Positions 19,559-48,000 of a stretch of DNA of 64,000 nt are shown here, in pieces. The position numbers and the translations under genes were made by a program. This DNA comes from Bugula neritina (taxonomy: Eukaryota; Animalia; Bryozoa): the NCBI GenBank assembly GCA_964035545.1, contig OZ037771.1:7659190-7723189 (forward strand), in the 5' to 3' direction. Position 1 is the stretch's first letter. The number at the start of each line of letters is the position of its first letter. The notes under the pieces were generated by a model. The model saw only the letters and a list, made by a program, of their open reading frames with translations, did not search any database and had not been told where the DNA came from.

Positions 19559-21118
19559 ATCCGTAGGTTTGAGAACTTAGTCTTTTAAACTATCTCTTGT
19601 CACTATATGAGAACTGGTGCTTATTTTGGTCAAAAATTTAGTTCAGTTTCAATACTTCATAAATTTCGCTTTTTACTATTTCCCAAGTTTACTACATGAA
19701 TCATGACTGCTCGCACATATTGATATGAACAGTAATTCTCTCGAATGGGGTATGCCAAAATCAAATTCAGATTTAGGCTAACAGACTCCTATCTAGCCGA
19801 TATATTACCTGTGCCATTTTTATTGGTGCGATTTTTACCGGACACTAATAAATACATATGGAATTTGGAAATAGGCCTTAATTAATAATATATGGAGAGT
19901 TTTGACAGAGACACTGAACTTTCTAGTGGCCTTTTTGGTGGCTCAGGGTTATTTTACGGCCTTTTCCCAAAAAAGGTTGAGCACCCATGTATTAGAGGCT
20001 CTAAAAGTGCTAATTGATTCAACTACTCAGTTTTTAAGGTGTTTATATAGTGTTTTGTCAGATTTCTTGAGCTGTTTGTGGTATAAGCGTTGCATACAAG
20101 ATCATTGTTATCACATTATCTCCTTATTTAGAGAAGATAACTTCACATCGTCAGATATTTGCTAACAAGCTGTTTTTAGAAGCACCCTGGCTCTATTTTA
20201 TCATCTTTTTTTATCATTTTCATATGCCCAGTGAATTCTAACTATTTTTTTATTTTCTGATTTTGCAGATCATGTTTGGAAGTTGCCTTCACCCTGATGC
20301 TAATACTGAGGCAGAGGTGCTGCACTAGGATGTTATAATGATATGAATAATAATGTTTACTGCAAAATGAAAATATACCAGTCTGTCTTGCATCTTTATT
20401 TCAGTTAACTATTTTCCCACATATATTGAATGATGACAGTTTCATGTTCAACATACCACCCTCTTATATTAATTATTTTGTAAACCTTTTCTCACATTTG
20501 ACATGTTTTTATGATTTATTACCTACTATAAAAGATGTTGAGATTTTGAAAAATTTATGAGGTTGAAGTTTTGTCTGCCGTAGTCATGCATAAATATTTT
20601 ACTAGCAGTTTTATGAAACGCTTAGCTTCGAGTTTGATGGACTTACATGCTACCTTGACATAGATATTACCCCATCTCCACAATGCTTATTAGGAAACTG
20701 CAGCTATTTGCAACATAATTATAAAGTGCAATATATTTATTTCGTGAATAAATGTGCTAGTAAATATGAGTAAATAATGTTAGCAATCATATAGTAATAG
20801 TGTATACATACAAAATCATTTGTCACTAGACTAAGTGCATGAGCTATGTATATGCAGAAGCATATATACATAGTATAGCAAAAGTATAAAATTGTAAATA
20901 GCAGTAAATATGTATATTCATAGTTCGCAGGTAAAGTATATCACATAGCAGTATATAGAGTGTCACATGTATAGAGCATGTAGTAAAATATAATACCACA
21001 TGCAAGGTTTAGATACTGTAGTCAGTATATACATAATATCTGTATTAAATGTGTATATATGATATAAATAGTGTAGTACCATACTCTACATGTCCACACA
21101 GGGATGTGGGAGCTCAGT

Positions 21119-23991
21119 CTACCACTCTCCATAGAATAAAGGAAACAAGTAAATCTTCCTTCTACCAGTGAGAGTATTTATAACCACAGGAGTCTGTGTC
21201 ACGTAAACAGTTGGATTTCTTTCTCTCCTTTTACCAGATATTTTCCTCACTCTGTGCTTCACCTTTAAATATTTTAAAACTAAATATATGCTGTTGTTTG
21301 CAGACATCAAAATTTTTATTTTTTTAAAATATACTAGATGGAAAACTAGAACAAATGTTATTCAAATAAAATATCAAGAAATTCTGTTCTAACAGAGATA
21401 ATAGAAAGGTATCAAATCTGAAAAAACATAATATAATGTGCAGGAAGCTTATAAAAAGTATTATATATGAAATAGAGAACTCAGTAAAGCTCATTCACTC
21501 TGCATCTTATACTATGACTATATCAAACTGCGACTATACTATACTATTACATGACGATGTTATACTATGACTATACTATACTATGACTATACAATAACAT
21601 GACTATAATATTACACTATGACTATATTATACTATGACTATACTACACTATGACTATAATATACTATGACTATACTATGACTATACTATACTATAACTAT
21701 ATTATTCTATGACTATATTATACTATTGTAGTAATTTGTGCAATTACTGAGCGTGAGTTATTTACTTGCGTATAGTTAGCTGGTTATTCTGCTATCAATT
21801 ACTAGGGTAGCTGTCGAGTACTTATATTTATTATCCACAATAAAGCATAAAACAAACATCACATCAAATTATCCTATACAACAGTCAACTACTAACACAT
21901 GTTACTACTTTAAGCCTCCGCTTACAACAACGTGATATAATGTTAATAACCCGGGAAGTGTCACGTGAATCGGAAGCATATCTTCCGGAGCTGCTAATTG
22001 GTTGCTACATAATGGTCTAAGTATTCCAAAAGTAGGGAGAGGACGATTCCCGTATTTGTACTTTGCACTACTCACTACACCATGACTATACTATACTATG
22101 ACTATACTATACTATGACTATATTGTACTATGACTATATTATACTATGACTATAATATACTATGACTATATTATACTATGGCTACATATTATATTATGAC
22201 TATATTATACTATGACTATACTATAACTAGTCACTACACCTATACTACTGTGACTACACCACACTGACTAATATGAAAACAGCCTCCTCTGAATAGGAAT
22301 TGATGTCACAGGAAGTTACTCACAATATCAAATAAGTCAGCAAGATCACGATGACAGCCATGTCTGTGTAAAGTCCTGACAAGTGTTCTTATCAATAATG
22401 AGCCACCGTAATCAAACTTCATAGAAGCACTGTCTATTAAAATAACACAATGAGTTGAATAGTAAATATTACACAGTGTAAAGTAACAGTGAGTGACACT
22501 ATCCAGTAAAAACTGGTGAGAAATGCTAATTGAAAATTTGAAAATTGGGTTATTTCAGCAACGAAAGGTATATCTTGAGAAAGTCACATGACTGGTGGGT
22601 TTCAAAACTACTTGATGGTGATTGGGAGTTGTGGCCCATGGTTTAGGTGAAAAGGGATTAACCACACAGAATTGTTTGTAACTTAATCGTCTCACTTTAA
22701 ATTAAAAACATTCAGCTAGAGAAAATACTTAGCCGAGTATTTTTAGGCAGCAGAGTATAAACTGTACAGACTAGTGTATCACAGATTACATGAAAACTAG
22801 ATAACTGTAACTCACACACAAATGGTCTATGTACTCAGTTCAGGTTTATGAAAGGTCATGTGATTAGACAGCACACCACAGCTGCTACCTGCTCTTTTTA
22901 TTCTATTTGTTACTAATTTTCAATTGAATAATGGATTTGCGTTTAAAATTTTGGCCGATAACACCCTGAGCAAACTTTATTAATAAAATTATGACAATCC
23001 TAAAATGATGCAAGAAATATTCGTTTCTTTCGGTGGACAAAATTCTTACTTTCAAAGCATGAGTGAAGGATTAGAAGGTCGTCAACATCAAAGTTCCTCT
23101 GTCCAGTTGAAGTCTCAGCTTCCTGTTGATGAGTTTTGAGAGCAGAAAGTTCTGGTGAGGAGGAGTTGGTACTCTGTTGAATATTCTGCTCAGTTTGACT
23201 GACTGAGTTACCTGATTGATTAGTAACACATGTGATATACCAACCAGTATTCTATGTATATGTATGAAGACTAGAGTATCATATAATACAGTATTACAAT
23301 AGTATAATATATTCTTACTCGTATCATATCTACACTCACCAACTCTGCACGCCTGAATAACCACAACTTTAGGCTTGCCGGCCATGTTGGGAAAATTTGT
23401 AGAGTTAATGAGACTGTAGATCTGTGTTAGATAGACTGGCTGTGAGTCAACTCCATGAATCATTCCATTAGCTCCGTGTGCAAACAGAAACAGGAAGAAC
23501 ATACCATAAGTGTTATGAATCTCATCTCTTGTCTCTGATTGAATACACTGGAGTATCTCCTGTATATGAATATAACACAACACACACAATATACAAACTC
23601 AAGCAAGCATATTTGTCACATCTCGTACTAGCCTCTAGGAAGTTAGCTCCGTGAAACAAAAGTTAGCCTAAAAGCGAAGATTCTGCATTTCCCGAACTTG
23701 ATAACTGATTCAATAGACAAGTCTGCAGGCTATTATAACAGTGAAGTGAGACATTAACCACTATTAACTAGTCACACTACGTGATAAGAAAAGGGAGACA
23801 ACTACAAGTAAATAGAAATATACCTCAGCTGTGAGATCCTTCTGCTTCACAACCTCAAATCTCATCTTCCTGAACAGAGCAAATGTGTTGTCAACATCAT
23901 AACTAGAGCCAAGTCTCTGTCCTATATTTCTATACTTGTTGTTGTTTATAATCAGAGCTCTTCCTCTGAATGGACTCGTCATCTTGTATAT
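21119..23991 (-). CDS. Caspase exons, copy B (5 exons, complete p20+p10)
   Basis: p20 motifs plus p10 exons SASMKFDYGGSLLIRTLVRTLHRHGCHRDLADLFDI (22324-22433, absent from ORF track) and VKHRV...QTPVVINTLTGRRKIYLFP. Confidence 0.9.
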
Positions 23992-26900
23992 CTGTAGATA
24001 CAGACTATGTAATTAGTTTAGTACTTATTCATCTCATATTATAAGCAACTGAAGAATAATGAGTTAAAAATCATCCATGAGTAGACTAATATGGTTTCGG
24101 ACATATTGTGTGGCTTTAACACAGGTGCCAGCCTTAACAGTGCTGGGAAAATTGAAAGTACAACCTGGCAGTTTGTTCCATAGATTAGTGACCATCATTC
24201 ATACTTACCGTACCGTAGGCCGTAACAGCAAATATCAGCCATTTTTACAAATGTCTGAGCTTCCTGTATGGCATTGTGGTACGTTAGGATCAAGCGCTGC
24301 TTGATTCAAAAATGTTGCGGCGGCTTTCTATTGGACAGAAAAACTTTTGCGTCAACGCTCAAGGAGAGCCAAGGCTATACAGAGATAACAGAGAGGAGAG
24401 CCAAGGCTATAGAGAGACAATAGAGAAGAGAGCCAAGGCTATACAGAGATAACAGAAAAGAGAGCCAAGGCTATACAGAGATGACAGAGAGGAGAGCCAA
24501 GGCTATAGAATATTCAACATGACATACAAACCTCTGAAGTGTTGATGAAGAGAGACTTGATACTCTGATTAGTAGTAGGAACTAGTGTCAACTTGGTAAG
24601 ATCTTCTGAAGTGGAGGTAGTACCTTCTTCTTCGTCCGAAACATCACTCAGTACATCATCAGTACCAACAGTATGAGTAGCAGCTCCACTGTGTCCAATA
24701 TTATCTACATGTACAGGAAACATCACATAAACAGCTCACAGAAATGTAATGAAACCAGCAACCTACAGGAACAACTTCAACTGTCAATAACAAACATGGA
24801 GAATCAGAAAGGAAGAAAGTTATTCCTAATCAATTCACTAGAAGTAAGTTTAACTCAAGATACCTGGTGGCTTGTAGTTGGTCTTCACAAAGTCACTCAG
24901 TTTCTGCAGCTCATCTCCAGAAAGCTGAAAAACTGCAATATAAGTATGAATTATGGAGGTTGCTATTACTTGGACAGTACATCGCCATCTAAATATTCTA
25001 TAAATAACCCAACAGAAGACAATCATACTAACTTGGGTGTAAAAGACAAGCTGGGATATCTCTGTATTTTCCACATCTACCAGGTGATGAATCTGAAGTC
25101 ATGGGAAGGGATTCACCATACTTTGGAGGTCGACACCAGGGTGGGTTGATGAACCTCTTTGGTCGCTTTTCTCCAACCAATGGGCAGTGAGCACACAAGT
25201 TGATACAGGTAATTTTACTTGCTCCCCACCATAAGTTGAAGTACTTTACGGTTGAATGAACTGAAGTGGTCAACATCCTCCAAGCATTGCCTATCTGTCG
25301 ACAAGCAGACGTTACGGAGATACTGAGTTTACAAGATTTGTAGTCATGCAGCAACTGCAGGGTGTAAGCTTCGTCTCTCAGCTCCACTCCATTCTTTTTC
25401 ACAGCTTTTTCACTACAATCCTGGATATCATTGAGAAGTTTCACAGAAATCTGGTGGTAAACGTACTGAGGGGGAGTCAGGCCACCAAACAACATGTCTA
25501 CTGACAGCTTTACAGGTTGTCTCCTGGAGGCAGTCAAGTCGGTGAAATACTCCTGTGAGCAGTATGGCATAGTGTAACTTAGTTTCTGGGATGAATCTTT
25601 CATCTCGAATAACAACTGGAAAGATTGCAGCAATGCGACTGCCACCTTCATCTTGTCACTCGTGGTGAAGCTGGTCTCTGCTATCAGAAGATGCTGAAAC
25701 AGCTTCTCACCCATCCCGCCAGTTCGAACAAACTCTTGAGCCAAATTATTAAACTCTGTTTTATTTTCTGTCAACAGAATATCAAGTGAATCCTCTTCAA
25801 TCGCTGACCGTCGATTGCTCCACACTTCCTTCTCGTGAGTGAAGAATACGTGGAGCAGCTTTGTAACCACGGAGATGTCGTAGAATACCAGAGACTGCAA
25901 ACTCTCCCTATCCTGGTACCAAATGAGATGGCCGCTGTTATGCATGTATGACAGAATCACTCTCAGCTGGTCTTCACTTTCCAACTTGCATTCAGTGACA
26001 AGTTGAAGCACTTCTGGAAATGTCTTGTAACTTCCATGGAATGAGTTGAATGTTTGAGCAACTTTTCTCCACAGAGTAGGCACCTTCTTCACGACTAGTT
26101 TACTATCAGATATGATATGACTTCTCAGCTGATCAAACACCTCTTCATATTCATCACCCACAACATATATATCTTGTTCTTGAAACATCTCTTGGCACTG
26201 AAAAAGAAAAACTTGTGCAAAGGAGCTGGAATAATTCTCTTTAGAATTTTCTTCTAGTTGTATCAAATTGAATACACTTTTGGTGTGGAAAAAGAACAGC
26301 CTTTTTAGCTCTTCAAATCCATCTGCACTGTAAGCATCTCGGTGAGTGAAAACCAGTTTGGGTGCTCTGAGCCCGGGATTGGCCAGGTACAGATGTGAGA
26401 GCCAATCAAAATATGTGCATCGAACTGCTTCATTACCATTCACTTCTAAACAGAGCTCTTCAAACTCTTTTAGATTCACAACCACAATAGGAATACAGTT
26501 CTGTTTCAACGTGAACTGGTAGGTAGATTGGTATATTTTATTGCCACCAAAATCTATGAACTGAAGAACATTGTCACCAACCACTAACTTTTCCATATTG
26601 AAGACACGAGTTATTTCATCTTCCACTGCATCAGCCGCTCTATTGGTTAATTTCCTTTTGCCATCTGATCCCACCAGCGTTTTAGTCAGGCTGGTTTTGC
26701 CAGACAGCGATCTACCCACTAGAGCGACCGTAGCTTCAGAAACTTCTACATGACCACCAGAACTAAGATCGTTATAATACTGTCTGATAGCTGGTAGTCC
26801 GTCTACACACACAGCATAAGGTGGAGATGTGAGTGATACACACATGTAGCAGTACAGTTTAGTCAGATTAGGCATGTTGAGAAGTTGAGGAGTTAAAGAT

Positions 26901-29900
26901 GTCATCTGAGAGTTGAGTGACAAGTCTAAGACTTGGAGATTCTTGAGTTGACCAACACTACCAAGTAAGTATACAGTATAACTTTAGTATTATTCTATAT
27001 CAAATGTGTTATGTTTAAAAGTAAAACTTGATTGAATACATAATAGTTAGGTATCTAATATAGCCTGAGAGAGAAATAGTGTTTGACAGCACAACTGTTG
27101 CAAATGACTAGAACACAGGCCAAACTGAAAATATACCGATTACTTGACTTAACAGTAAAACTATTACAGTGAAAAAATAGAGTATTGAGTCACAATTTAC
27201 AAATTGTGTTACATGTAAAAACTTTGGATCTACAATAATACAATTGTAATATATGGAAATTGTATTATTGCAAAACTATTAAAGCCATGCGTAAAAGTTT
27301 TGACACCCTCATACATTTTTGCAGCTTTGAAAAATGGCTAAACAGGATGTTCAATCTCCTAATGTTTCAAACAATTTAAAGTAATGCCATAATGTTACAT
27401 ATGGTATTGTGTGTTGTTTTGTAATCTAACTAAACACATTTAAACAATTTCAAATAGATAAACTATATTTGCTCTTAGAAGTTCCTGATATGAAGTAAAT
27501 TTTCCTGTGTTGTTTACCCATTTAGGTTAATTTTTGCCTTCATACCATTGTACATTCAAGGCAAAATAGTGTATTGTGAATGAATATTTACAAAGTTTCA
27601 ATCTGGGAACAAACATTGCGCAACTTAAAATGAAACTGTATTACAGACTGAGTAAGCAGCAATGACATAATATACCTCACAATTCTACTATTTTCTAAAC
27701 TCAAACTTCACTTCATTATGATGAGTGGTGGAAGACAAAATTTTAGTAGACAGCAGTCATCAAACTAAGAAGTGTAATGTTTTGAATGTTAACTGCATGC
27801 ATTAGAGTTGTTTGTTATTACTGCATGAATCAGATGATTTTTGGCAACTGTATGATGTCATATTCTGCATGTATATAACATGAAGATTTACAAATAAATA
27901 GTTAGTTTTAGCTCTCAACGAAGTGTAGTCTCTACAGCATAAATATAATAACTGCAACTTAACACAACATAAAAAGAAGTACTAAAAGAAAGAAGTAATT
28001 AGGTTTGGTTTTGCAGCATTACAGAAAACTGGGGAGTGAGTTTTGGAATGTTATGACATTGGTGATTTCATACTTATAATTGGCTCATGAAAATTACTAC
28101 TCTATGGCAAGAACTGGTGAAATAAAAATTTCTGAAAGATAAATTCATGCTGCCAGCTTTGTGGAGATTATGCAGAAAAAAGCAACTTTAGAGAAAGTAT
28201 AAAAAATTTACTTTCTACCATACTTTCCTAGTAAAAGAGAGGAAGTTCAAGTACTTCAGTGGCCCATGCAAAAGTTAAAATAGATTTATAGACAATACAA
28301 AGAAAAGTAGCTGAGATAAAACCAACTGACATGGTCCATTTAGCTAGAACTGTCATCAATGCATGGTACAGGATGTGAGATAAACTACAAAATCAGCTGT
28401 GCTAGTGGAGAATATGTCAGCCTACTGCCTAGCAGTCATTGGTGCTAATAGTTACTCACTCACACTGAAACACTGACATGTTATGTGCAAGAATCTTTTC
28501 ACACACAGAAGACATCCCATTCTACAATCTTCTTCATTTTGCTAACCAAATAAAGAGAAAATTTCAATTCACGCATAATTATGTTTTAGTGCAAAATTTG
28601 ATGGTAAAGGGCTTTTTAGCACTTTTCTATCAATAATCTCGTGTTATACAGTTGAAAATTATCTAGAGTTGTAGCTCAGCCAATCAGTTCCATTATATAC
28701 ATATTCAAATATTTTTAGCATGTAAAATTTCAGAAATTGCAAATAAAGATGTAAACTTGTAAACAATTTGGGGGTGTCAAAACTTTTACTCGTGACTGTA
28801 TAATATATTGCAAGCTGCAATCAGATTTATTCAAACTTAGTAATCTCTATAGTTTATATAAAATAGATGATCATATATGATATCTTATATGTTTACATAA
28901 TAGTAAAACATATATAACTAATATAACTCACCTGTCTGATAATGTATGTAAGTGACAGTCCTCTAGACTTAACTGTGTAAGTGACTCCATCTTTGGTATC
29001 ACCTCAGGTAATGTTCCTAACTTATTACCAGACACAACTAATGTGTGTAGATGTGTGAGTTGGGAGAGACTGTAATATACATACAATATACCATGACTAT
29101 AATTATACAAGTTACAGGAATATTATATGGTAGATATGCGGTGACTCTAAATTATTATTGCCTTGCAGGTAAGAATTGTGTCAGTTATCTCTGTTTTAGT
29201 ATTATATCCACTTCATCACTAGAGAGTAGGTATGCTGGGACTTCTAGTATCACTTCTATTATACTTTATTATATGTTTACATAATAGTAGAACATATATA
29301 ACTAATATAACTCACCTGTCTGGTAATATATGTAAGTCACAGTACTGTAGAAATATCTCTGTAAGTGACTCCATCTTTGGTATTACCTCAGGTAATGTTC
29401 CTAACTTATTCTCAGACACATCTAATGTGTGTAGATGTGTGAGTTGGGAGAGACTGTAATATACATACAATATACCATGACTATAATTATACAAGTGACA
29501 GGTATCTTATATGATAGATATGCAGTGAGTCTCAATTATTATTGCTTTGTAACTTGTAAGTATGAATTGGGTAAGTTATTAGCATTTGAGTATTATATTC
29601 ACTTTATCACTAGAGAGTGGGTATGCTGGGACTACTAGTATTAATTTTATTCTACTTTATTATATATGTTTACATAATAGTAGACTATATATAACTAATA
29701 TAACTCACCTGTCAGGTAATGTGTGTAAGTAACAGTACTGTAGACGTAACTCTGTAAGTGACTCCATCTTTGGTATCATCTCAGGTAATGTTCCTAACTT
29801 ATTATAGGACACATTTAATGTGTGTAGATGTGTGAGTTGGGAGAGACTGTAATATACATACAATATACCATGACTATAATTATACAAGTTACAGGAATAT

Positions 29901-32900
29901 TATGTCAAACATGTTATGAGCTTTTATTATTTCTGCTCTGCAAGTATGAATTGTTTATAGTCTGGCAGAAAAACACCAATTTTTGACTTAGGTTCGCACC
30001 CCCGGATAAAGTTTTTTTCTCTCCTGATTATTCAAATATAGGGTCTAGGTAAATGTTTCCAGGTGGGTGTGGACTTCTTACCCTTGAGCATTTTGAGAAA
30101 TTCAAGATGGCCGCCAGGCACCAAATGATTTTTTCTAATTCAAATGTACCTACCCATTGGGGCTAAATTTAAGGTTCCAATGCTTTGAAATCTTTAGAAA
30201 TTAATATAATAAAGATGCATGTGCCTTTATCATATGCATTATTGAGTAATAGGCAAATGATACCCAAGGGTAACTAAGCTAAGCCTTAATCATTCATTTT
30301 TTCAAGTTTAACCTAGCCTTGCCGTGTTTATAATTTCCTTTTATCTCTGCATCAGTTTGTTCTAACTTCATAAAAGTTTACTATATGGTGTGATTTTATA
30401 TGCTGATTACAAGTATGTCCACCAAATAAAGCTGAAAGGAGTTCTGCAAACTTAAAATGCAACGTCATTGCCATATGAGTTGAATAGCAATTTATTTCCA
30501 ACTGGCATGCCTATCGAAAAGATTTGTTGAGCTGCCAACTTAATAGTTATTTTCAGTTTTAAAACTTTAGCTATGTTTTTTAAAGTTATAAAAAGGGGTC
30601 AAAAATTTTAATAACACAGCACCAAGGCTTCTTAACATAATTTAATTGCTTTATTATTGACACATCATTTATCTAAATATTGACATTTTTGCTTTCGAAA
30701 ACTATTTCTACAATCAGCCCATTTGACTTTTCCTCTAAAAGCATTTGCAACAGTTTTTTATAAATGAAAATGTATTTCATGCTGAGGGAAGTAATACATC
30801 TATTAGAACAGTGGTTCCCTACCTTTTTCATACCAATCCCCTTTCATTAACGTTTACTATTAATTTCTCCCCTTTTAATGACCTATGTTGGGTGCACTGG
30901 AACACTAATAGCTGAAAGTGGTTTGGTAGAAGTAGTTAATTCTACTTTTGGTTGTTTCTCCAAAATGCTAAATAGAAAAAGTTTCTCCAGAATGTACAAG
31001 GTTTGAGAATATTGGTGGGAGAACTGTTAAAGCTAGTCTTGATGAAAGTGTAATCACTAGCATGAAGGAGCTTGAAAAGATGTTGATTAAGATTGCAGAG
31101 AGCTCAAGAACAGCAAAACTGTGGGCCATGTGCTTTATTGGACCAATTTTTACCATCAACACCCACATCATATCTGTTAGAAAATGAGACTGGGCCTTAT
31201 ACCTAGCAATAGAAGAGGAAATGCACTATCTGCATAGCGTGGAGGTCATGCCACAAGATGTAAGGATTGAATTCGCGGCTGGTAACCACGCAATGCATCA
31301 TAAACGCGGCCAGCTCGACGGCATCTGGTCAGACATGACCATTGAGGTGACCTTTGTGAGATTTGGTCACAGCAAGGGGGAATCATTGGCATCACCACTA
31401 AATTTGAAACTCTCAAGGTGTGGGTGTACAGCACTTCTGCATGCAACAAAATATAGTATGGCCTCAGTGACATCAGGGATGAGTCTGAAATAAATGCTTT
31501 CACTACTCATAAGGATGAGATGCAATCAAGAATCCAATCTGATTCAAAGGACAGGGAGTCTGTCAAACGGAAGATTGAACTCTGCAGTGACCCACTAAAA
31601 GAATGATGCCACCCAGTTGCTCTTGTCAATATTGAAGCAGATAAGTGCAACTGAGATGAGGATGCTTAAAAAAATTTACAATATGAATTGGGAAGACCAT
31701 GTAACAAATGATAATATAAAGGAGGAGGCCAAAATAGAAGCTATCGCAATACACATGAGGAGAAGACCTCTTCAATAGTATGGACATGTGCGCAGAAGAG
31801 ATATGGAGGAAGATATTATAATGGTGGCTGAGATGAAGATACAGAGAAAGAGAAAGGGAGAGGGGGGAGGGGGCAAAAAAGGTTAACGGATACAGTGAAG
31901 GATGGCATACTGAAATGTGGCTTCTCAGATGAAGATGTTGACAATAGAATCAGATGACACTCTCTGATAGCACTTGGTGCCCTGCAAAACCGCTACTCAT
32001 CTTGGACAACGGCGTACTGGATGAGAAAGTCTGAGACAAAGCCCTATGATGAACAATTTGCTGCCTTCCCATGGTCTCTCAGGGGCAACAATGTAGAATA
32101 TTGGAAAGGGAGTCCAGTCATACTAAATGTCTTGGTAGAAGGAAAATGTGATTTGGTGACACTAGTGCTTTTTTCAGGATTACTATTCATACAAGCTACC
32201 AAGTTTATGCTATGTTGCTACAATTATGCAAAGTGCTCCTCCATGACATCTACAAGACAAAAGACTTGGGAAACCAAGGTCAGCAATGCTATTTGCGATG
32301 TGCCTTTAACTTATGTACTTTGCCTCCTACAGATGAAGCTATTGGACAATGTCACCAGAGCACACCTCCAGGTAGCCATATGAAACTGCGGCATTAAGCC
32401 CACTAGAACATTGGTAAGTGATAGGGAATCTAATAGAATCTCTTTTCCCAAAAGGATTATGAAATGATGTTGTGCTTACACCAGACAGTATTATGAAGTA
32501 GATCATGTTAGTTAATTTGGTGTACACTCGACGGCTCTAGCTTTTGGCGATTTTTTACAGTTTAGCTGCTATTGTATACAGATTTTTGCCTCAAACTATC
32601 AAAATTTTAACAAATAAAACTGAATAATTAAGGTTTTTCCAATTATGCATGATTTTCTATGTCTATTCCTAATTTATTATTACATTGAGATATTATATAG
32701 GCCGTGATGATTCACAAATTTATATTCAGCTCGTATGACAATGACGCCGCGCTTAAATGTTGCAGGACCTCTTCCCAGTCATTTTGTTATGCATAGATAG
32801 AATCAGCAAATTCTATTACCCCATATAGTAAGTTTCATGAATTTTGAGCAAACTTTAAAATGTTTGATCATAATCTGCTGATGTGTACTAAATAAAGTAA

Positions 32901-35900
32901 AATGGCCCAAATTCATTAAATGCTCCTGTGGAAGCCAACAATCATGTTAAACAACAAGATATGGCTATTCTAGTACATCTATCCCATGCACAGAGTTCTG
33001 CCCTTGTGAAGCAGTAACAGGAGTGTGCTGCAATGAACTAACATTTCTAACAAATACTAATGTTAAAAAAAAATGAAAAAGGTGTTTAATATGAACATGA
33101 GTGAAAGTTTGTCGCATTTGTACGATTATATATACGTTCAATTTTAACTTTAGCTGAGCAATATGTTGCATCTGTATCTTTTTTTCACTTTTTATTTCCT
33201 GGCAATAAGTAATGTTTTTTTTCTATATCTGCCCAGTGCCCAAACAGTCATTCAAAAACCTTGTATCATTTCTCTGCACCATATGTGATGTTTTATTGAA
33301 GCAATTCCGATTTTTGAGCTGAAAAACATGTCTCTTAGCTCTTTACTTTGATTTCTTTTTTACTGGCATTGCACATATTCATTCTAAAAATGCACATCTA
33401 TTTTAATCATCAAAAAAATTTTGTTTTTGCAACATAATATAGACTTTATGCCGACTAGATTACGATTTTTTCATAATTGGCGGCCATCTTGGATTTCTCG
33501 AAATGCTCAAGGGTGGCAGGTCCACACCCACCTGGAAACATCTACCTGGACCCTCAAGATAAATAATCAAAAGAGAAAAAAACTTTATCCGAGATTGCGA
33601 ACCTAACCCCCAGTTCTGCCAGACTATTAAGTTATTAGTGCTTATGAATTCAATTTAAAACTGGAGAGTTGGTATGCTGAGATTACTAGTATCAGTTTTA
33701 TTATACTTTATTATATGTTTACATAATAGTAGAACATATATAACTAAGATATCTCACATGTCTGGTAATGTATGTAAGTGACAGTCCTCTAGACTTAACT
33801 CTGTAAGTGACTCCATCTTTGGTATCACCTCAGGTAATGTTTCTAACTTATTCTCAGAAACATCTAATGTGTGTAGATGTGTGAGTTGGGAGAGACTGTA
33901 ATATATATACGATATACCATGACTATAATTATACAAGTTACAGGAATGGTATACGGCAGATATGCAGTGAATATAAATTATTATTGCCTTGTAAGTATGA
34001 ATTGGGTACATTATTTGCATTTGAGTATTATATCCACTATATTATTAGAGAGTTGGTATGCTGGGACTACTAGTAATAATTTTATCATACTTTATTATAT
34101 GTTTACATAATAGTAGAACATATATAACTAATATAACTCACCTGTCAGGTAATGTGTGTAAGTAACAGTACTGTAAATGTAACTCTGTAAGTGACTCCAT
34201 CTTTGGTATCACCTCAGGTAATGTTCCTAACATATTATAAGACACATCTAATGTGTGTAGATGTGTGAGTTGAGAGAGACTGTAATATACATACAATATA
34301 CCATGACCATAAATATACAAGTTACAGCAATGGTATGCAGTGGGTTTATAACATTATAGCTTTTCAAGTATGAGATGTGGAACTTATTTTTGTTTTTGTT
34401 CAATTTATTACTGTAAAGTTGGTATGCTGGGACTACCAGTTTCAGTTATATTATACTTTATTATATGTTTACATTATAGTAGATTATATATAACTAATAT
34501 GTCTCACCTGTCTGGTAATGTATGTAAGTCACATTCCCGTAGATTTAACTCTGTAAGTGACTCCATCTTTGGTATCACCTCAGGTAATGTTCCTAACTTA
34601 CTAAAAGACACATCTAATGTGTGTAAATGTGTGAGTTGGGAGAGACTGTAATATACATACAATATACCATGACTATAATTATACAAGTTACAGAAATATT
34701 ACGTTAAACATACTTTGAGGTTATATAAGGTGAAGAACAAAAACAAGGACCAAGAAAAACACAGCTAACTGCCTGAGACTTGGAACTTGGAACTAGAATG
34801 ACCCTCCTAGCTGTTCCAAACTTCAAGCTTCTCGGCCACTGCCAATGGGCCATGCAATTTGCAGATGATGTAATGCTGTGCAATGGATAGGCAAATAGAG
34901 TGATAGGTTAGAAGAACAGAGAAAAGAAAATTAGAAGATGCTGGACTAAAGCTGGGCAGAATCAAGACCGAGTACATGCTACCAGTGAGAATAGATAACA
35001 AGGAGAAGAAGAAATACTATGACTGAGATAACTACAGTGCTCTGCCTGAGACTAGTGCTTTCAAATGTCTTGCAACTATAATAATCAGAATGGTGGGTTG
35101 TGGCACTGAAGTAGCTAGGAGGATTGGAGTGACTTGGGACAAGTGGAAGGATCTCTCAGAAGTGCTGTGCGATAAGAAGGTATCAACTAAACATACAGTA
35201 CTTCTGTTTAGAATATCCATTCTGTATGGTAATGAAACCTGGTCAGTTACTCATGGGATGGAAGACGGGATGAAGACAGTAGAAATGATACACAATTTTG
35301 GGATAACTTACGAGGAGTTGATGAATTGTATCCACCATATTACTGGAGAGTTGGTATGCTGGGACTACTAGTATCAGTTCTATTCTACTCTATTATATAT
35401 GTACATAGAATTAGAACACAGAGGGAATGTAGTATACTTACATACAAAATTAGCAATTAGACCAAAGTAAATATGGGAAGAAAGTGCTTTTTAAGAGATT
35501 AGATGATTCAGTGTAACAAATTGCTAAATCAAAAGAAGTTGTAACAATTTTCCTGTAAAGAGAATGTTGAAGATGGGTTTTGCTCTGCATGGCCCGACTT
35601 TGCTGCCAAGGTACCCACCTGAGAATTACTGAATACAGAAGGAGAGTAAAAAAGTTGGACAAAAAAAGTAGATAAATCTCTGTAGCTTCAATTCACTTAA
35701 ACTTGACTCTGATGCAAGTAAATTATGATGCAGTATAAAACTGGCCATAGGTGTGATAGTAGCTGTAAGGCAGGCAATAACAGGTAGGCCTAACTACAAC
35801 TACTTTGAGATAATGAGAATAAAGTGTTCACATCCCTGGACTAAGTATAAAGTGATTATAAAAGCTGGAGATACAATTGAGATAATGCTGATAGGTAGGA

Positions 35901-37775
35901 AGGGAGATCTTATGTCAGAGTGACTCTAGATTATTACTCATATGCATATATAAACTATAGCTGTGTTCAGAACACATTAAATATAGTTGATTGTTTTACT
36001 CCATATTTCATTACATCTAAAAATATAGAATTTTATCTAACAATTTCAACAACTTGAACAACTTCTAAAGTACCGACAATACACTGAAAGAAACGAAGAC
36101 AAAACTAATAGCAGTGAATACTTTGAAGAATATGAAACAAACTTAAGGCTACAAGCTCTGCAAGTAATATTATATTTGATTTGTGATTTCCTTAATGAAT
36201 ATTTAGCTATCCATTTCTCTATTGGCAGAATAAATATTAAAGGTTATCCCCACATGCAGGTAATCAGCTATGATGTGTGAGTCACCAGAAGTCATTGTTG
36301 ACCTCTTCCCCAGCAGCTTCAGCTCAAACTAATATAACTCTATTTAAGTACAATAGTGGAAAAAATTCCATACTTTTAAATTCAATTCTTTATGGGTCTT
36401 TATGATTTTCTTTTCAGGGGTTTGATTGAACATAATTTAGTTTGCACTTTTTCTCATCAAGCACACAGACTTTTCCACAATTCCACTCTTACTGCACTCA
36501 CTTTTATAATGCATGTCAAACAGAATGATTACTCAGGTGCAGTAGAGGTATGAAGGAATATTGCTGACATGCCATACAAGTATAACTCACTAACCATTTC
36601 AATATTCCAGTAAATAGTCAGTGAGTTACAACTGAAATACTGACAGCTAATTACACAGCTCAAGCATATATTATTATCCAAAGAGAATTCATGTTCTAGA
36701 TAGAGGGATTGTGACCTTTAACATGTTGATAACAAAGTGATGATAGACCTACTATTCTAAACTGTTGATACTGGTTAGCCGTTGAATACACAAGGTAGTT
36801 ACAAGTGGAGCAAACTCTGTAACAGCAGGTGGCAGATCTCCCTCTATCTTTAGGTCAGTGATCACATGACCTGAACAGAGCTTCTTTATTTCCTCCTTTG
36901 TATAGAATTTTGTAGATTTGGAGGACAACTCTCTTTTGTTAATAGGATCCATACCAGAGTGCCTCCACCAACACCTGTATTTCTTTGCTAAAAACAAATG
37001 TTCTATTTTTAGTATATATGTACCCAATTATAGAGTAAATATAATATCACCTGGTTTATAGTACATTTATATATGTTAATATTCTAATAGTATAAATTAC
37101 ATCATTTTACTGTTGAATTACTTATATAATAATTGAAAATATAAACCAGCAGTAAACATATTCCTATATTCAAAGAGACAAACATACTAATTGTTGAGGC
37201 ATCAGCATGAAGATTAATAGGAATAAAAATGATACTTATTCAACTTTTTATATCAGGTAGACTGAGAACAAATGAGAAACTTATCTGATAGACAATGCTG
37301 ATGTTTTTATAAAGTTTGACACCCACTTTACGACAGAAAATGTTGATATAAAAGAAAATATTAGAAAGTATAAGGAATAGTGAGAATGAGAAGTAACCTA
37401 GGTTCTCATGTAACCCAGAAGTTTCTCAACAGCTTTAATTGTCAAGTTGACAGCTTCATTAAACAACCCTTAGATGGAAAGTTACAGAAAGTCTGCTTCA
37501 TTAAGCTACATGCAGATAAAAGTCACAGAAAGTGTACAGAAACACCAAAGTATAAATATAGTTCAGAGAAGAAACTTAAAGGGGGATAACAAAGTCTTTA
37601 TTTTAACTTTCAAGTTGGAAGATGTAATTGAAACCTATTCAGGTATATTTAAAGAATACTGTATTCAGGTGTGTATTTTACCATTCTCCAGACCAACTAA
37701 TATTGTATACGGACCTGTTTGTGAGGTTGCTGCTGTTACTTCATCCTCAGAACTGGTTACAGAGTTGGTAGCCAT
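21119..37775 (-). CDS. LRR-Roc-COR-caspase gene, copy B (complete 16-exon model, 4164 nt, about 1387 aa; exon-2 acceptor mutated)
   Basis: Exons 37682-37775, 36753-37023, 34508-34645, 34142-34279, 33758-33895, 29709-29846, 29316-29453, 28932-29069, 25033-26957, 24864-24932, 24532-24704, 23824-23991, 23340-23559, 23050-23211, 22324-22433, 21119-21262 join in frame with no stop. All introns are GT-AG except the acceptor at 37024-37025, which reads GG. Confidence 0.8.
21506..22230. repeat. 16-bp TATGACTATATTATAC satellite interrupted by a ~345-bp insert (21727-22071, possible solo LTR)
   Basis: Tandem units in the last caspase intron of copy B. Confidence 0.85.
24362..24508. repeat. Same 32-bp minisatellite, about 4-5 copies
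   Basis: Direct tandem units. Confidence 0.9.
25033..26957 (-). CDS. Roc-COR exon, copy B
   Basis: Same Roc motifs; open to the GTTAGT donor after LLHP; C-terminal CAHC motif. Confidence 0.9.
27281..28798 (+). mobile_element. Decayed Tc1/mariner element in the intron before the Roc exon (homologues at about 5155-6330 and 56958-58050)
   Basis: Inverted ends GTAAAAGTTTTGACACCC / GGGTGTCAAAACTTTTAC..CTG|TA; remnant LVENMSAYCLAVIGANSY resembles a Tc1 transposase C-terminus. Confidence 0.65.
29958..33626 (+). mobile_element. Degenerate Academ-like DNA transposon in an LRR intron of copy B
   Basis: Termini TAGTCTGGCAGAA / TTCTGCCAGACTA, ~150-bp imperfect inverted arms, TTA 3-bp TSD, decayed ORF pieces (GIWSDMTIEVTFVRFGH, LPPTDEA, RAHLQVAI). 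Superfamily inferred from TAG...CTA ends and TSD length. Confidence 0.75.
31645..32025 (+). mobile_element. RTE LINE 3' fragment nested in the Academ-like element
   Basis: ATEMRMLKKI...WEDHVTNDNI...MRRRPLQ*YGHV. Confidence 0.7.
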
Positions 37776-42063: not shown

Positions 42064-45000
42064 CTACCACTCTCCATAGAATAAAGGAAACAAGTAAATC
42101 TTCCTTCTACCAGTGAGAGTTTTTATAACCACGGGAGTCTGTGTAACAGTACCTTCTGAGTCGGATCTGTTACCTGATATTTTCCTCACTCTTTCTTGTA
42201 CCTTTAAATATTTCATAATCAGGTAAACATTGGTCAGTATTACTGACACTACAGCATGAGTTAGAATGTATCGCATCTGTAAATTCACCTACTAGAAAAA
42301 ATTGTATTTGTGAATAGCAAAATTATATATACAAATAGTAAATCTATAATAAATTCAATTATATTGATATTGAATAGAGTGGAGACTACATAGCTAACAC
42401 CATAATATACTGTGATGGTATTACTATACTACAGTGTATTATGACTATAACATAGTATGATTATAGTATATTGTAAAATATTTGTGAAGGAAAGATTCTA
42501 TTTGCGTGAGAATGATTACATATTGCTATGACTATATATTACTACGACTATATTATACTATGACTATATTATACTATGACTATATTATACTATGACTATA
42601 TTATCCTATGACTATATTATACTATGACTATATACTACTATGACTATACTATACTATGACTATATTATACTATGACTATATTATACTATGACTATATGAT
42701 ACTATAAAAATAACTCACGCAATTTTTTAGTCGCTATCTCTGTGAGAAAACCCCTGATGGAAGGGGTTTTTGTTAAAGCCGGCTAAGGACTTATTTAAAT
42801 GAGGCACAAGAGCAATTATGACTGGATGCTCTTCCTAACATCACCAATGGCCTTCGTCTGGGGTCGAGCCCATGACCTTCAGGCTTACTAGGCAAATGCT
42901 CTAACCCCTAGACTACGGCTGCTCCCTGACTATATGATACTATGACTATATTATACTATGACTATATTATAATATGACTATATTATAATATGAATATACT
43001 ATACTATGAATATACTATACTATGACTATATTATACTATGACTATATTATACTATGACTATAATATACTATGACTATACTATACTATGACTATATTATAC
43101 TATGACTATACTATACTATGACTATATTATACTATGACTATATAATACTATGACTATACTATACTATGACTATATTATACTATGACTATATATTACAATG
43201 ACTATATTATACTATGACTATATACTACTATGACTATATTATACTATGACTATATTATACTATGACTATATTATACTATGACTATACTATACTATGACTA
43301 TATTATACTATGACTATATAATACTATGACTATATTATACTATGACTATATTATCCTATGACTATATTATACTATGACTACACTATACTATGACTATATT
43401 GTACTATGAATATATTATACTATGACTATATTATACTATGACTATATTATAATATGACTATATTATAATATAGTCATATTATACTATGACTATATTATGA
43501 CTATATTGCACTATGACTAGTCACTACACCTATACTACTGTCACTACACCACACCAACTAATACGAAAACAGCCTCTTCTAAATAGGAGATGATGTCACA
43601 GGAAGTTACTCACAATATCAAATAAGTCAGCAAGATCACGATGACAGCCATGTCTGTGTAAAGTCCTGACAAGTGTTCTTATCAATAATGACCCACCATC
43701 ATGGAATCTCATGGATGCACTGTCTATTAAAATAATACAATGAGTTGAATAGTAAATATTGTGGTAGATTTTAGTGGTGCAAGTATATTGTATTAATCGA
43801 AAAGGTTTACTCTATATTGTTTTATGTATCTTGTGAGTTCGACACTGTCGGAGTGTAACTATGGACAGTAGTGGCACCATTAGTAGCCACCAATCAGGAC
43901 AGTGACACTAATTGATAGCAGGTGGAGCTAGCTACTCGTAGTTGCAGTGCGCTGAGTAGCTAGCCGGCAGAGCAGCTTGGGACTTCATTTAGAACAGTTG
44001 TGTATTAAAGCTCACTAATTATGTAATCGTTTTCTATTCATGCTAGCAGTAAATAACCTTCTTGTATTTGTGTAAATAATAAAGTATCTTATCGTAAACA
44101 ACCTGTCGCAGTGGCTTTGATTAAGTAGACCCACAAATAATAATAGTGAACTGGCAAAATTCACTACACTGGTGGCAGCGGTGGGATCTCACTTAATACA
44201 AATGCCCCTAGTCAGGGAGTAAGATGGCCGACGAAGTCGTCGACGCGCCCCGACAGGAGCCAGCAGCAATAGAGGAGGATCACATAGGCGGCCCAGCGCT
44301 GCCTATGGACAGGTACCACTTGCGGGCTCCCACCTTCTCTGGAGAAGAAGATGTGGAGCAATTCATCACTGAGTTCAGTGATGTGGCGGACATCTGCGGA
44401 TGGCCGAACAGGGTTACTCTGATCCAGCTGCGGTTGTGTCTGACAGGGCCGGCTAAACCCTATGGGATAAGCCAGAATGTCGGTGACATATTTGAAGCAA
44501 TACGAGCTAGGTTTGGATTAACCGCTCGAGATGCTCGCGTGCAACTGCAGAGTCTTAGGAGAAATCCTAAGACCAATCTGCGAGAGCACGCTACCGTAGT
44601 CGAACGACTGGCACAAGTTGCTTACAGCGACTTGCCTGCCGATGGTCGACAGAGCCTAGCACTGGATGCATTCCTCCAGTCCATTAACAACCTCGGTCTT
44701 AAACAGCATCTGCTGGTGGCCGAAGTTGAGACTATGGAGAGAGCTCTAAGGCTTGGGAATGCCTATTTCCAAGCCGACAGTGCAAGTCGACCTGGCGCGA
44801 CAGTACAGCAAGTCGGGGCAGACGACGTGTCGACGTCGTCAACGAAGACAGCTGTACAAGTCGCAGCGGCAGCAGCAGACGAATCTAGCTTAACCACGAG
44901 CTTGATTCGAGAACTGCTCGCCGAGTTCAGGCAACTGCGCCAGCAGGCGACAGCCGAGAGACCCAAGAGGTCGTCGGTAGCTGTCGCCGACAGGCGCGGC

Positions 45001-48000
45001 CCCGTATGCTGGGGCTGTGGTAGTGGTGGGCACTTCCTACGAAGTTGCCCCCGCGGCAGTGGGAGGCGGTTAAACAGCGACGGCCCACGGTAACTTCCGC
45101 CTACCGTGGGCCCGAGTTTAACCCCCCAAGGCAAAGGCTACGGCCCCCACCCCATCGGGTGAGGAGGCCGCCTTCGCCAGAGTGGCAAGTCCCAAGGAGA
45201 GTGAGTCGGCCGCAAGGCCCACCAATACCTCCGGCTTGGGCACTCAAAAACCGCTTTGAAGGTTTGCTTGATGAGGGAGTGAACGACGAATGGGAGCACA
45301 ACAGGGATTTTCCTCGGTTGCCCACACGAGCATCAGTCCGAGAATTCACTCGGCCGCCCGTGTGTGAGCGAGACCGAGACGTACCCTGCCCGCCCATGCA
45401 ACGTCGACGACCCCCTCGCAACCGAAAAGCACAGGTGCATCCCCAATTCCATGCACATGAGGTGTCGCCTCAAGAGACAAATCGCTCAGTGAGCGCCCAG
45501 CCATATGGAAGCAGCTATTTCCTCCCCGGCAAAATTGCTGGTAAAGCTGCCACATTCCTGTTGGATACTGGGTGTACCACAAATCTACTGAGTCGACGTC
45601 TCTTCGACACTCTCAGTGCCAAGGACAGGGCTAGCCTAGAACCATATGAGGGGGAACGCGGCACGTTGGCGGACGGGTCGTGTATTCCTTTCTATGGGGT
45701 AATCCAGTTGACTGGTAGAGTCCGTGATCAGATGATCAGTGAGACCTTCATCGTCAGTCAACTCAAGGAGGATGCCATCTTGGGCATGCCATTTCTGAAG
45801 CGACACAGGTGCTACATCGACTTTAGCAAGTCGGCAGTAGTGATGGCGGGGCGTGAGCTGGCCTGTGTCGACCGATTTGGCCGACCCTTGGTGGGGGGAG
45901 TGCAGGTGGTACAGCGCTGTACTGTACCTGGGCGCTCCCGGGCTACAGTTCGCTGCAGAGTGAACTGTAGGGAGATCTCCGAGCTCGGAGTGGTGGAAGG
46001 TGCACTGGGGGGCGTCCAGCTCGCTAACAGTCTGAATAGACTGGATGAGCGGAGGGAGTTCCTGGTCCAGTGCGTAAACCCTTTCACGGAGCCGGTAGAA
46101 TTACCGGCTGGGTCTCTAGTAGGGAAGTTCCACTCCGTGCAAGAGGAGGATGTAGGGCCCGCGCTGGAAACAGCGGGCGGTGCCCGGGGAGTACCCACTA
46201 GAGACGGCAGGGGGCCGGTGCCTGAACACGTAGCAGAGTTGTACGAGGATGCCTGTGATGGCTGCGAGAGCAAGCGAGAACGCCTGGAGATGGCGCGGCT
46301 ACTCTCTGAGTACAAGGATGTGTTCAGTTGCGGCGACCATGACATGGGTCTGACTGAGACGGTTCGTCATGAGATACCCCTGGCGGCGGGGATGGTGCCG
46401 ATTCGGCAGCCGACCCGCCGGTTAGGTCCTGAGAAGGAGAGAGAAGTGAGCCGTCAGGTGCAAGACCTTCTGAACCGGGACCTGATTGAGCCAGGCCATG
46501 GGGCCTGGAGTTCTCCAGTCGTCCTGGTTCGGAAAAAGGATGGTAGCTGGAGGTTTTGCGTTGATTATCGCAGGCTGAACAGCGTGACCATCCAGGACGC
46601 TTACCCTCTCCCGAGGATTGATGAGTCGCTCGATGCCTTAGCTGGTAGCAAGTTCTTCAGCACGTTAGACTTGTTAAGCGGGTATTGGCAGGTGCCCCTG
46701 AGTCCTGAAGCACAGGACAAGGCCGCGTTTATAACGCGGGATGGGCTCTGGAAATGGAAGGTGTTGCCATTCGGACTTACGTCCGCACCAGCCACCTTCC
46801 AGCGACTCATGGAGCAGGTCCTGAGTGGACTGCACTGGAAGACCTTGCTCATATATCTCGATGATGTCATCGTCATCTCCCCCGACTTCGACACACATGT
46901 CAGTCGACTCAGGGAGGTGTTCGACAGACTCCGAGCTGCTAACCTGAAGCTGAAGCCCTCGAAGTGTGCATTACTGCAACGCGAGGTCAAGTACCTGGGC
47001 CATGTAGTTGGTCGAGACGGGGTCGCCACCGACCCCGAGAAGGTACGGGCCGTGAGGGACTGGGCCGTTCCTGTCGACCTCTCTGAATTGCGGGCATTCC
47101 TGGAGCTGGTTGGGTACTATCGTCAGTACATACCAGACTTCGCAGGAATTGCACAGCCGTTAAATCGGCTGACCGCAAAGGGGGTGCGATGGCAGTGGAC
47201 GCAAGCTGAGCAGAAGGCATTTGACCACCTGAAGGATCGCCTGGTGGAGGCACCCATCTTGGCGTATCCTGACCCTGCGAAGGAGTACATTTTGGATACT
47301 GATGCCAGTAACCATAATGTGGGGGCTGTGCTATCGCAGGTCCAAGATGGTCGCGAGGTGGTGGTAGCTTACTATAGCAAGGCCCTGTCGGCGCCTGAGA
47401 AGAACTACTGTACAACCAGGAGGGAACTCTTGGCAGTAGTCAAGGCGGTCAAACACTTTAGACCATATCTATACGGGCGCACATTCCGGCTTCGGACGGA
47501 TCATGCGTCCCTGATATGGCTGTGTCGACGGGCAGAACCATCCAGCCAAGTGGCGCGCTGGCTAGAGATCCTGGCAGAGTTTTCTTATCGGATCGAACAT
47601 CGACCCGGTAAGAAACACGGTAATGCAGATGGACTCAGCCGCCGCCAGGCAGATGGGTGTAAGCAATGCCAGAATATCGAGCGCAGGGACGGTGGACCCC
47701 CTCGCTCGGACGTCGAAGCGCAGTTGGGGAAAGCGGGTGTGTACAGCTGGGAAGAAGGGCAACTCCTGTCCGAATCACCCAACAAAGCTGTTAACAACCT
47801 TCACGCAAACCCCACGTTGCTTCGGAACGTCAGGGAGCTATGTCGGCTCCAGTCCACGCTACCAGGAGTGGTAGCTGACCTAGTCCGGGCCAAGAAGGAG
47901 GGACGGCGGCCGAGTGAGGCCGAACAGCGAGTGAAGAGTACTGAGTTTAAGTACTTCTGTGACCGCTGGGACTCCCTAAGGTTCAACAGCGATGGGCTGC

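Follow-up and report, generated by a model that had tools for sequence, protein, structure and literature searches.

Whether a leucine-rich repeat (LRR) sensor, a Roc-COR GTPase and a complete caspase are joined in one animal polypeptide, or belong to neighbouring genes, is the question raised by a locus of the bryozoan Bugula neritina. The locus lies in a window of 64,000 nucleotides of AT-rich animal DNA (C7:7659190-7723189 of the 216-Mb assembly GCA_964035545.1), and all coordinates below are positions within this window unless they carry a prefix such as C7. It holds one gene on the minus strand, from 37775 to 21119, in which LRR cassettes are followed by a Roc-COR region, two linker exons and five caspase exons. 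The exon chain is composed of six LRR cassettes of 138 nucleotides, one Roc-COR exon of 1925 nucleotides, the linker exons L1 and L2 and the caspase exons E1 to E5, and it forms a single open frame. From the Roc-COR exon to the TAG stop there are 990 codons with the sole stop at the end, and GT-AG introns are used throughout. Profile, fold and similarity searches were run exon by exon or with public full-length homologues, and the joined frame was examined by local scripts for length, phase and stops. It was confirmed that the LRR, Roc-COR and caspase exons form one spliced frame. The single-chain LRR-Roc-COR-caspase proposed in the initial annotation was thus borne out by splice evidence, by its conservation across some 100 paralogues and by gene models made independently for other species.

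Four sequencing runs were compared over the region 21100-27000. Three of them (X4, X1 and X14) each stem from a different study. The fourth, X16, covers the introns and carries none of the exon-exon joints, and was therefore taken as DNA. The contigs of X4, X1 and X14 contain exons only, with GT..AG joints at E4-E5 (in all three runs), E3-E4, E2-E3, E1-E2 and L1-L2 (in X1 and X14), and the L2-E1 joint was found in X4 and X1. This last joint was read as 23993/24535 with one intervening letter; since one single-nucleotide polymorphism beside the junction gives that pattern, the reading corresponds to the splice 24532|23991. One contig of 413 nucleotides (X1 record 4) carries L1, L2, E1 and the start of E2 together. 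One X14 contig runs through L2 and L1 into 31 further letters, which match the COR exon, read from its end at 25033, at about 26 of 29 positions. As the match is only about 26/29, this contig is likely not from the present copy and probably derives from a paralogue or from another population. With these contigs, every junction from COR to the caspase stop has been seen in RNA. The borders 25033>24932, 24864>24704 and 24532>23991, for which a check against RNA had been proposed, lie exactly as claimed, the COR-L1 border being carried by one contig. Among the other predicted borders, those of E3, E4 and E5 had to be shifted by one to four bases according to the reads.

The Roc-COR exon (26957-25033, minus strand) encodes the last LRRs, the Roc GTPase, COR-A, COR-B and a C-terminal Cys/His cluster. 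In the Pfam search both Roc (9.5e-7) and COR-A (6e-9) were above the cut-off, and COR-B scored only 0.068. The sequence motifs of the GTPase are situated on the same strand at 26693-26716 (P-loop GRSLSGKT, G1), 26554-26543 (DFGG, G3) and 26347-26336 (THRD, G4). Alignment of 44 family members showed that the Gly and Lys of the P-loop, the switch I Thr, DFGG and T-H-x-D are near-invariant. The AlphaFold (AF2) model of the exon has a predicted local distance difference test score (pLDDT) of 87.8 and a predicted template modelling score (pTM) of 0.87. Its top Foldseek matches are LRRK1, the LRR-Roc-COR protein of C. tepidum (CtRoco) and LRRK2, with 560-700 columns aligned, and it also matches the isolated COR domain 3dpt. 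As the structural matches cover LRRK1, CtRoco, LRRK2 and an isolated COR, COR-B is present though missed by Pfam. The family profile, searched against PDB sequences, matched the Roc regions of the C. tepidum and M. barkeri Roco proteins, LRRK1 and LRRK2. A Roc with G1, G3 and G4, followed by COR-A and COR-B, makes this protein a ROCO family member, and judged by motifs and predicted fold its GTPase part looks functional.

A cluster of the form C-x-H-C ... C (C577, H579, C580 and C617; CAHC at 25184-25195, minus strand) is found where COR-B ends, within the final 60 or so codons of the Roc-COR exon. The cluster is invariant in the 44 family members, and CAHC is present in the amphioxus ROCO-caspase models too. 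By its residue pattern it may be a zinc site; no description of it was found in the Roco literature examined.

The caspase part is distributed over five exons on the minus strand. E1 (23991-23824) starts the p20 subunit with IYKMTSPFRGRALIINN... and matches Peptidase_C14 at 6.4e-9 over profile positions 1-49, and E2 (23559-23340), with the catalytic His and Cys, matches it at 6.1e-13 over positions 48-130. E3 (23211-23050; ..FDVDDLLILHSCFE), placed by RNA joints, forms the inter-subunit linker between p20 and p10 and the start of p10. It is followed by the p10 exon E4 (22433-22324), with RNA joints and an open frame, and by E5 (21262-21119) with the stop TAG at 21121-21119. When caspase domains of the bryozoan Watersipora are aligned to the exons one at a time, E1, E2, E4 and E5 together span positions 2-286 of 289, so the domain, p20 and p10 together, is complete. 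The His of AHG (23481-23473, E2) aligns to SHG of CED-3 and the Cys of QACRV (23355-23341, E2) to QACR of CED-3, and on this alignment the predicted His/Cys dyad is intact. In QACRV the fifth residue is Val and then comes Gly, a variant of QACxG. The nearest solved relatives of the caspase part are CED-3, caspase-2, caspase-8 and caspase-3. The S1 pocket for Asp, which we take to be Arg179, Gln283 and Arg341 in caspase-1 numbering, was mapped from alignments with CED-3 and the paralogues; its first Arg (QRLGS) and its Gln are kept. In place of the second Arg this C7 clade has Lys (ASMK, 22420-22428, E4), whereas Arg is found in most paralogues, in Watersipora and in CED-3. Pfam searches of L1, L2 and the bryozoan full-length models revealed no death-fold family such as CARD or DED.

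A separate observation concerns paralogues in which the catalytic Cys is lost. They lie at C6:3.79 Mb, C6:4.08 Mb and C8:8.28 Mb and have Ser (..LEASSGG) or Ala in its place, with the His and the remaining domain kept. By analogy with cFLIP, these copies may be pseudo-caspase regulators.

Between COR-B and the caspase lie the two linker exons, L1 (24932-24864, minus strand, 69 nucleotides, phase 1-1; IFQLSGDELQKLSDFVKTNYKPP) and L2 (24704-24532, minus strand, 173 nucleotides, phase 1-0), both seen in spliced RNA contigs. L2 encodes an acidic Ser/Asp stretch with the motif DVSD (24645-24634) and then ends in ...IKSLFINTSE; the family form is D[LVI]SD...IKQLF.NT.K. It was found in 22 of 24 sampled paralogues, where the acidic motif is typically NDDLSDLSDEDE, the end is ..IKQLFSNTDK and the following E1 starts with V-[FY]-x-M. 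L1 was detected in a paralogue of 66% identity. BLASTP of the L1 and L2 peptides gave no match to the Watersipora linker, and a local L2 profile built from 23 paralogues matched Watersipora RefSeq models directly before their caspase domains. The same profile gave no match in the amphioxus models. Its sequence makes D-x-S-D a candidate autoprocessing site, and the linker Ser residues, which resemble CK2-type phosphorylation sites, could gate the cleavage.

The gene is not a singleton. A first look at the genome with the Roc-COR exon gave 132 candidates, among which at least 70 relatives were scored, and exon E2 has 139 genomic relatives. A caspase exon follows on the same strand in 68 of the 70 listed Roc-COR exons, 1-11.6 kb downstream with a median of 1.5 kb. 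A second search, with a divergent member as query, added 25 Roc-COR exons, all of them matched by hand to listed caspase exons, and a third subfamily added six Roc-COR/caspase pairs. At least 99 ROCO-caspase loci are therefore present in the genome, and the pairing is kept down to 36% Roc-COR identity. About 46 caspase exons have no scored Roc-COR exon beside them, with clusters at C9 9.32-9.41 Mb and C2 30.5 Mb.

Two of the paralogues lie in the window itself, and matching splice phases had been claimed for all three copies. Copy 3 (56627-42064 from Roc-COR to stop, minus strand) upholds this: its frame is intact, and its splice sites and phases agree with those of the gene. Copy 1 (4824-261 from Roc-COR to E3, minus strand) has the same junctions but carries an in-frame TGA in its Roc-COR exon, and its E4 and E5 fall beyond the window. 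The E3-E4 intron of copy 3 measures 8.2 kb because of an inserted long terminal repeat (LTR) retroelement. This element, of the Ty3/gypsy type, occupies 44000-50000, is GC-rich (55%) and lies antisense in the intron; its open reading frame at 45045-49619 on the plus strand is an uninterrupted pol frame of 1524 amino acids with protease, reverse transcriptase, RNase H and integrase. Within the LRR region of copy 3 there is also an element of the long interspersed nuclear element (LINE) type at 58249-61886 (plus strand), with a 953-amino-acid reading frame for an APE endonuclease and reverse transcriptase. It is preceded by a 239-amino-acid reading frame with a baculovirus-FP-like domain.

The LRR part is the most variable region. 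The six cassettes of the gene (34645-34508, 34279-34142, 33895-33758, 29846-29709, 29453-29316 and 29069-28932, minus strand) are open exons flanked by AG and GT, each with phase 2-2 and two LRRs. Twelve cassettes within the window were compared. A rough count of differences per pair and codon gave 1.05 (nonsynonymous) against 0.004 (synonymous) at seven hypervariable codons, which occupy x positions of LxxLxLxx, while the other 38 codons of the cassette gave 0.055 against 0.062. This is a strong signal that the concave face of the LRRs is under diversification. The 3.9-kb intron between the third and fourth cassettes (29847-33757) contains several short open reading frames on both strands, which are probably repeat-derived.

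Upstream of the cassettes two candidate coding exons were found on the minus strand. The first (37690-37775, 3' limit approximate) opens at the ATG at 37775 with MATNSVTSSEDEV...; this ATG lies in the open frame 37808-37668, in agreement with the start codon assigned earlier, and the exon is 88% conserved with the region upstream of copy 1. The second (36755-37027, splice sites approximate) has an open frame ...WWRHSGMDPINKRE...LTSINSLE; it matched no Pfam family and has weak similarity to the N-terminus of one Watersipora protein. Searches by tblastn with Watersipora or Bugula N-termini did not place the N-terminal exons. From the exons found and from Watersipora models of 1,413 and 1,419 residues, the predicted product, a cytosolic protein of several domains, is estimated at some 1,350-1,450 residues. 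Its predicted order is a short N-terminus, about 14 LRRs, Roc, COR-A, COR-B, an acidic linker of 80 residues and a complete caspase with p20 and p10.

The distribution of the architecture was followed by an HMMER scan of 1.8 billion representatives and then by Pfam and name look-ups. Public models which combine LRRs, Roc or COR and Peptidase_C14 were found in Watersipora subatra (for example XP_067948342.1 and XP_067947674.1, the latter named MFHAS1 homolog), in Bugula neritina (KAF6024315.1, named CASP8, a 96% match to this genome) and in three Branchiostoma species. Branchiostoma floridae XP_002614028.1 / C3XQ16 contains LRRs, Roc, COR-A, COR-B and a full Peptidase_C14, and in amphioxus there are at least 12 ROCO-caspase models in three species and hybrids. 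A word-index search with the Watersipora caspase part found matches in Watersipora only, and an Atlas search gave generic caspase clusters only, under 0.9. An architecture search for these four domains had been suggested as one of the checks, and in its light the novelty was overstated. As regards characterised proteins it stands, since none was found; the architecture itself, however, is present in existing bryozoan and amphioxus annotations and touched on by papers of 2008 and 2021. Our literature search, the coverage of which is incomplete, found no paper on bryozoan ROCO-caspases and none on animal ones beyond the amphioxus 'LRRs-caspase' genes. New with respect to the literature found are the ROCO identity, the bryozoan expansion to about 100 genes with hypervariable LRRs and the conserved cleavage-like linker.

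The amphioxus 'LRRs-caspase' hybrids were listed by Zhang et al. 2008, who proposed a direct link between recognition and apoptosis (PMC2575513). Roc-COR is unmentioned there and the models are without RT-PCR (reverse transcription polymerase chain reaction) verification (PMC2575513). Like the bryozoan protein, the amphioxus models unite LRRs, Roc, COR-A, COR-B and caspase. They differ in that their Roc-COR identity to the bryozoan family is 21-27%, that the bryozoan linker profile fails to match them, and that their closest kin are amphioxus ROCOs with GT4 glycosyltransferase, OTU or Death domains. These relatives share 73-80% COR-B identity with the caspase-bearing ones, which indicates recent effector swapping on a constant LRR-Roc-COR chassis. 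By sequence comparison, the bryozoan fusion probably arose independently of the amphioxus one.

Bacterial LRR-AP-GTPase-COR proteins, in which at least 24 different effectors, caspase-like ones included, can occupy the C-terminus, were described by Kaur et al. 2021 (PMC8195603). They share with the bryozoan gene the order of sensor repeats, Roc-COR switch and effector. They were predicted to counter invaders, their LRRs evolve rapidly and a genome holds several paralogues (PMC8195603). In contrast, these proteins are prokaryotic, carry a bacterial-type caspase-like peptidase and come from a computational study only (PMC8195603), whereas the bryozoan gene is an intron-rich animal gene with a typical animal caspase. 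Among animal ROCO proteins, MFHAS1, LRRK1, LRRK2 and DAPK1 have the same LRR-Roc-COR core, the fold matches LRRK1 and LRRK2, and RefSeq calls several bryozoan and amphioxus members 'MFHAS1 homolog'. The vertebrate ROCOs, however, end after COR or bear kinase, WD40 or death domains, and none has a protease. A 2019 review of Roco proteins names four vertebrate ROCOs and leaves caspases unmentioned (PMC6337361).

A functional parallel is offered by NLRC4, NLRP1, Apaf-1 and CED-4, which are nucleotide-gated repeat sensors with a caspase activated by proximity; NLRs also form large variable families in invertebrates. In NLR inflammasomes and the apoptosome the switch is a STAND ATPase and the caspase is recruited through CARD, PYD or DED adaptors, while the bryozoan protein has a Ras-like GTPase as its switch and carries its caspase covalently. 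As its NTPase is a Roc GTPase and not a NACHT or NB-ARC domain, the protein is no member of the NLR/STAND class. By analogy, it may nevertheless work like an NLR. A six-frame scan of the 216-Mb genome for NACHT, only a lead in so intron-rich a genome, gave one weak PF05729 match (33 bits, profile positions 3-47). With NACHT matches so scarce, the family might stand in for the NLRs.

Initiator caspases are activated by induced proximity. We propose, with a probability of about 0.62, that the gene, one of about 100 or more paralogues, encodes a nucleotide-gated, proximity-activated caspase in one chain which serves as an immune or allorecognition sensor. The variable LRR face would bind a ligand or guard a host target, and binding would shift Roc-COR to another nucleotide and oligomeric state. 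In this way at least two caspase domains would come together, as they do in initiator caspases, and the active caspase may then cut itself free at the D-x-S-D of the linker. Such a protein would kill the cell or signal by proteolysis, either in immunity or in the allorecognition of colonies. The interpretation given in the initial annotation was similar and is upheld in part, for the architecture and the intact-looking parts. Its mechanism, by which ligand sensing would change the nucleotide state, COR would dimerise and the caspase would be activated with no adaptor, stays a proposal, and the direction in which the GTP state drives dimerisation is uncertain (PMC6337361).

Several points weigh against this proposal. 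The COR-L1 junction, seen in a single X14 contig, is the weakest link of the splice evidence. The RNA data are short-read contigs among paralogues of about 90% identity and none spans from LRR to caspase, and the exons upstream of 34645 are candidates read from open frames. In the working model of Roco proteins the GTP-bound form is a monomer and the GDP-bound or nucleotide-free form a dimer (PMC6337361); with a monomeric GTP form, the direction of the switch that would gather the caspases is uncertain. Prediction of a COR-B homodimer (residues 440-631, two copies) gave a score of 0.00, which counts neither way. The Lys in place of the S1 Arg and the QACRV in place of QACxG suggest that substrate specificity or activity may differ in this clade, and the catalytic Cys is absent (Ser or Ala) in three of 24 sampled paralogues. 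The literature search, with incomplete coverage, found no bench work on any ROCO-caspase member.

The same data have to be weighed under other explanations. The locus might consist of two adjacent genes, an MFHAS1-like LRR-Roc-COR gene and a prodomain-less caspase initiated at the ATG at 23982, with the fusion as a minor read-through product. An in-frame ATG does lie there, 9 nucleotides into E1, and transcript starts are invisible in the contigs, which can neither map them nor prove one molecule. The Met of this ATG, however, belongs to the Y-x-M motif before the first caspase strand, which Watersipora, amphioxus and every sampled paralogue retain, so it is not evidence of a separate start; this agrees with the earlier claim that the caspase has no obvious first exon of its own. 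RNA contigs moreover link L1, L2, E1 and E2 and join COR to L1. L2, useful only as a coding linker, is retained down to about 36% Roc-COR identity and in Watersipora, and order and strand are kept at no fewer than 99 loci. Two separate genes are therefore highly improbable.

With a real fusion, the caspase might instead be switched on by other means than Roc-COR dimerisation. The LRR-Roc-COR part would then be an autoinhibitory or localising module, and an upstream protease would cut at D-x-S-D and free an effector-type caspase acting downstream in a cascade. The conserved DxxD-type site in the linker fits such a role, as does effector caspase-3 among the nearest solved relatives beside CED-3, caspase-2 and caspase-8, and the roughly 46 caspase exons unpaired with Roc-COR could be the partners. 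We regard this as unlikely, given that the hypervariable LRR face and the expansion of about 100-fold suit receptors better than cascade substrates and that the GTPase motifs are conserved. It is also conceivable, though quite unlikely, that the caspase acts as a signalling scaffold or as an enzyme of limited proteolysis in the manner of MALT1 or caspase-8/cFLIP, or that many copies are decaying duplicates. The replaced catalytic Cys in 3/24 paralogues, stops in a few Roc-COR exons along with the TGA of copy 1, and the unusual S1 and active-site residues of this clade would be expected then. Against this, open frames, splice sites and the dyad are kept in most copies, transcripts of the gene occur in several RNA data sets, and the codons outside the variable positions are conserved.

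The proximity-activated single-chain caspase thus remains the preferred reading, and the group, with about 100 such genes in the genome, gives the impression of a large and so far uncharacterised family of one-chain receptors for cell death or immunity. A wider and tentative picture, which we consider possible rather than probable, is that of about 100 germline-diversified intracellular receptors which sense through hypervariable LRRs, hold their own caspase under GTPase control and kill or signal through it, replace NLR inflammasomes in an animal apparently almost devoid of NACHT genes, and possibly form a basis of allorecognition, with a fusion independent of those in amphioxus and bacteria. 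If the proposed mechanism is true, it would be the simplest known animal wiring of recognition to a death protease, with no adaptor. The coupling of Roc-COR nucleotide state to output, the same question as for LRRK2, would become testable in a soluble protein, and so would the minimal needs of caspase activation by proximity and the way in which invertebrates that lack NLR expansions diversify their receptors. Bacteria, amphioxus and bryozoans, which have probably acquired this fusion independently, would offer a clear case of convergent design in immune systems.

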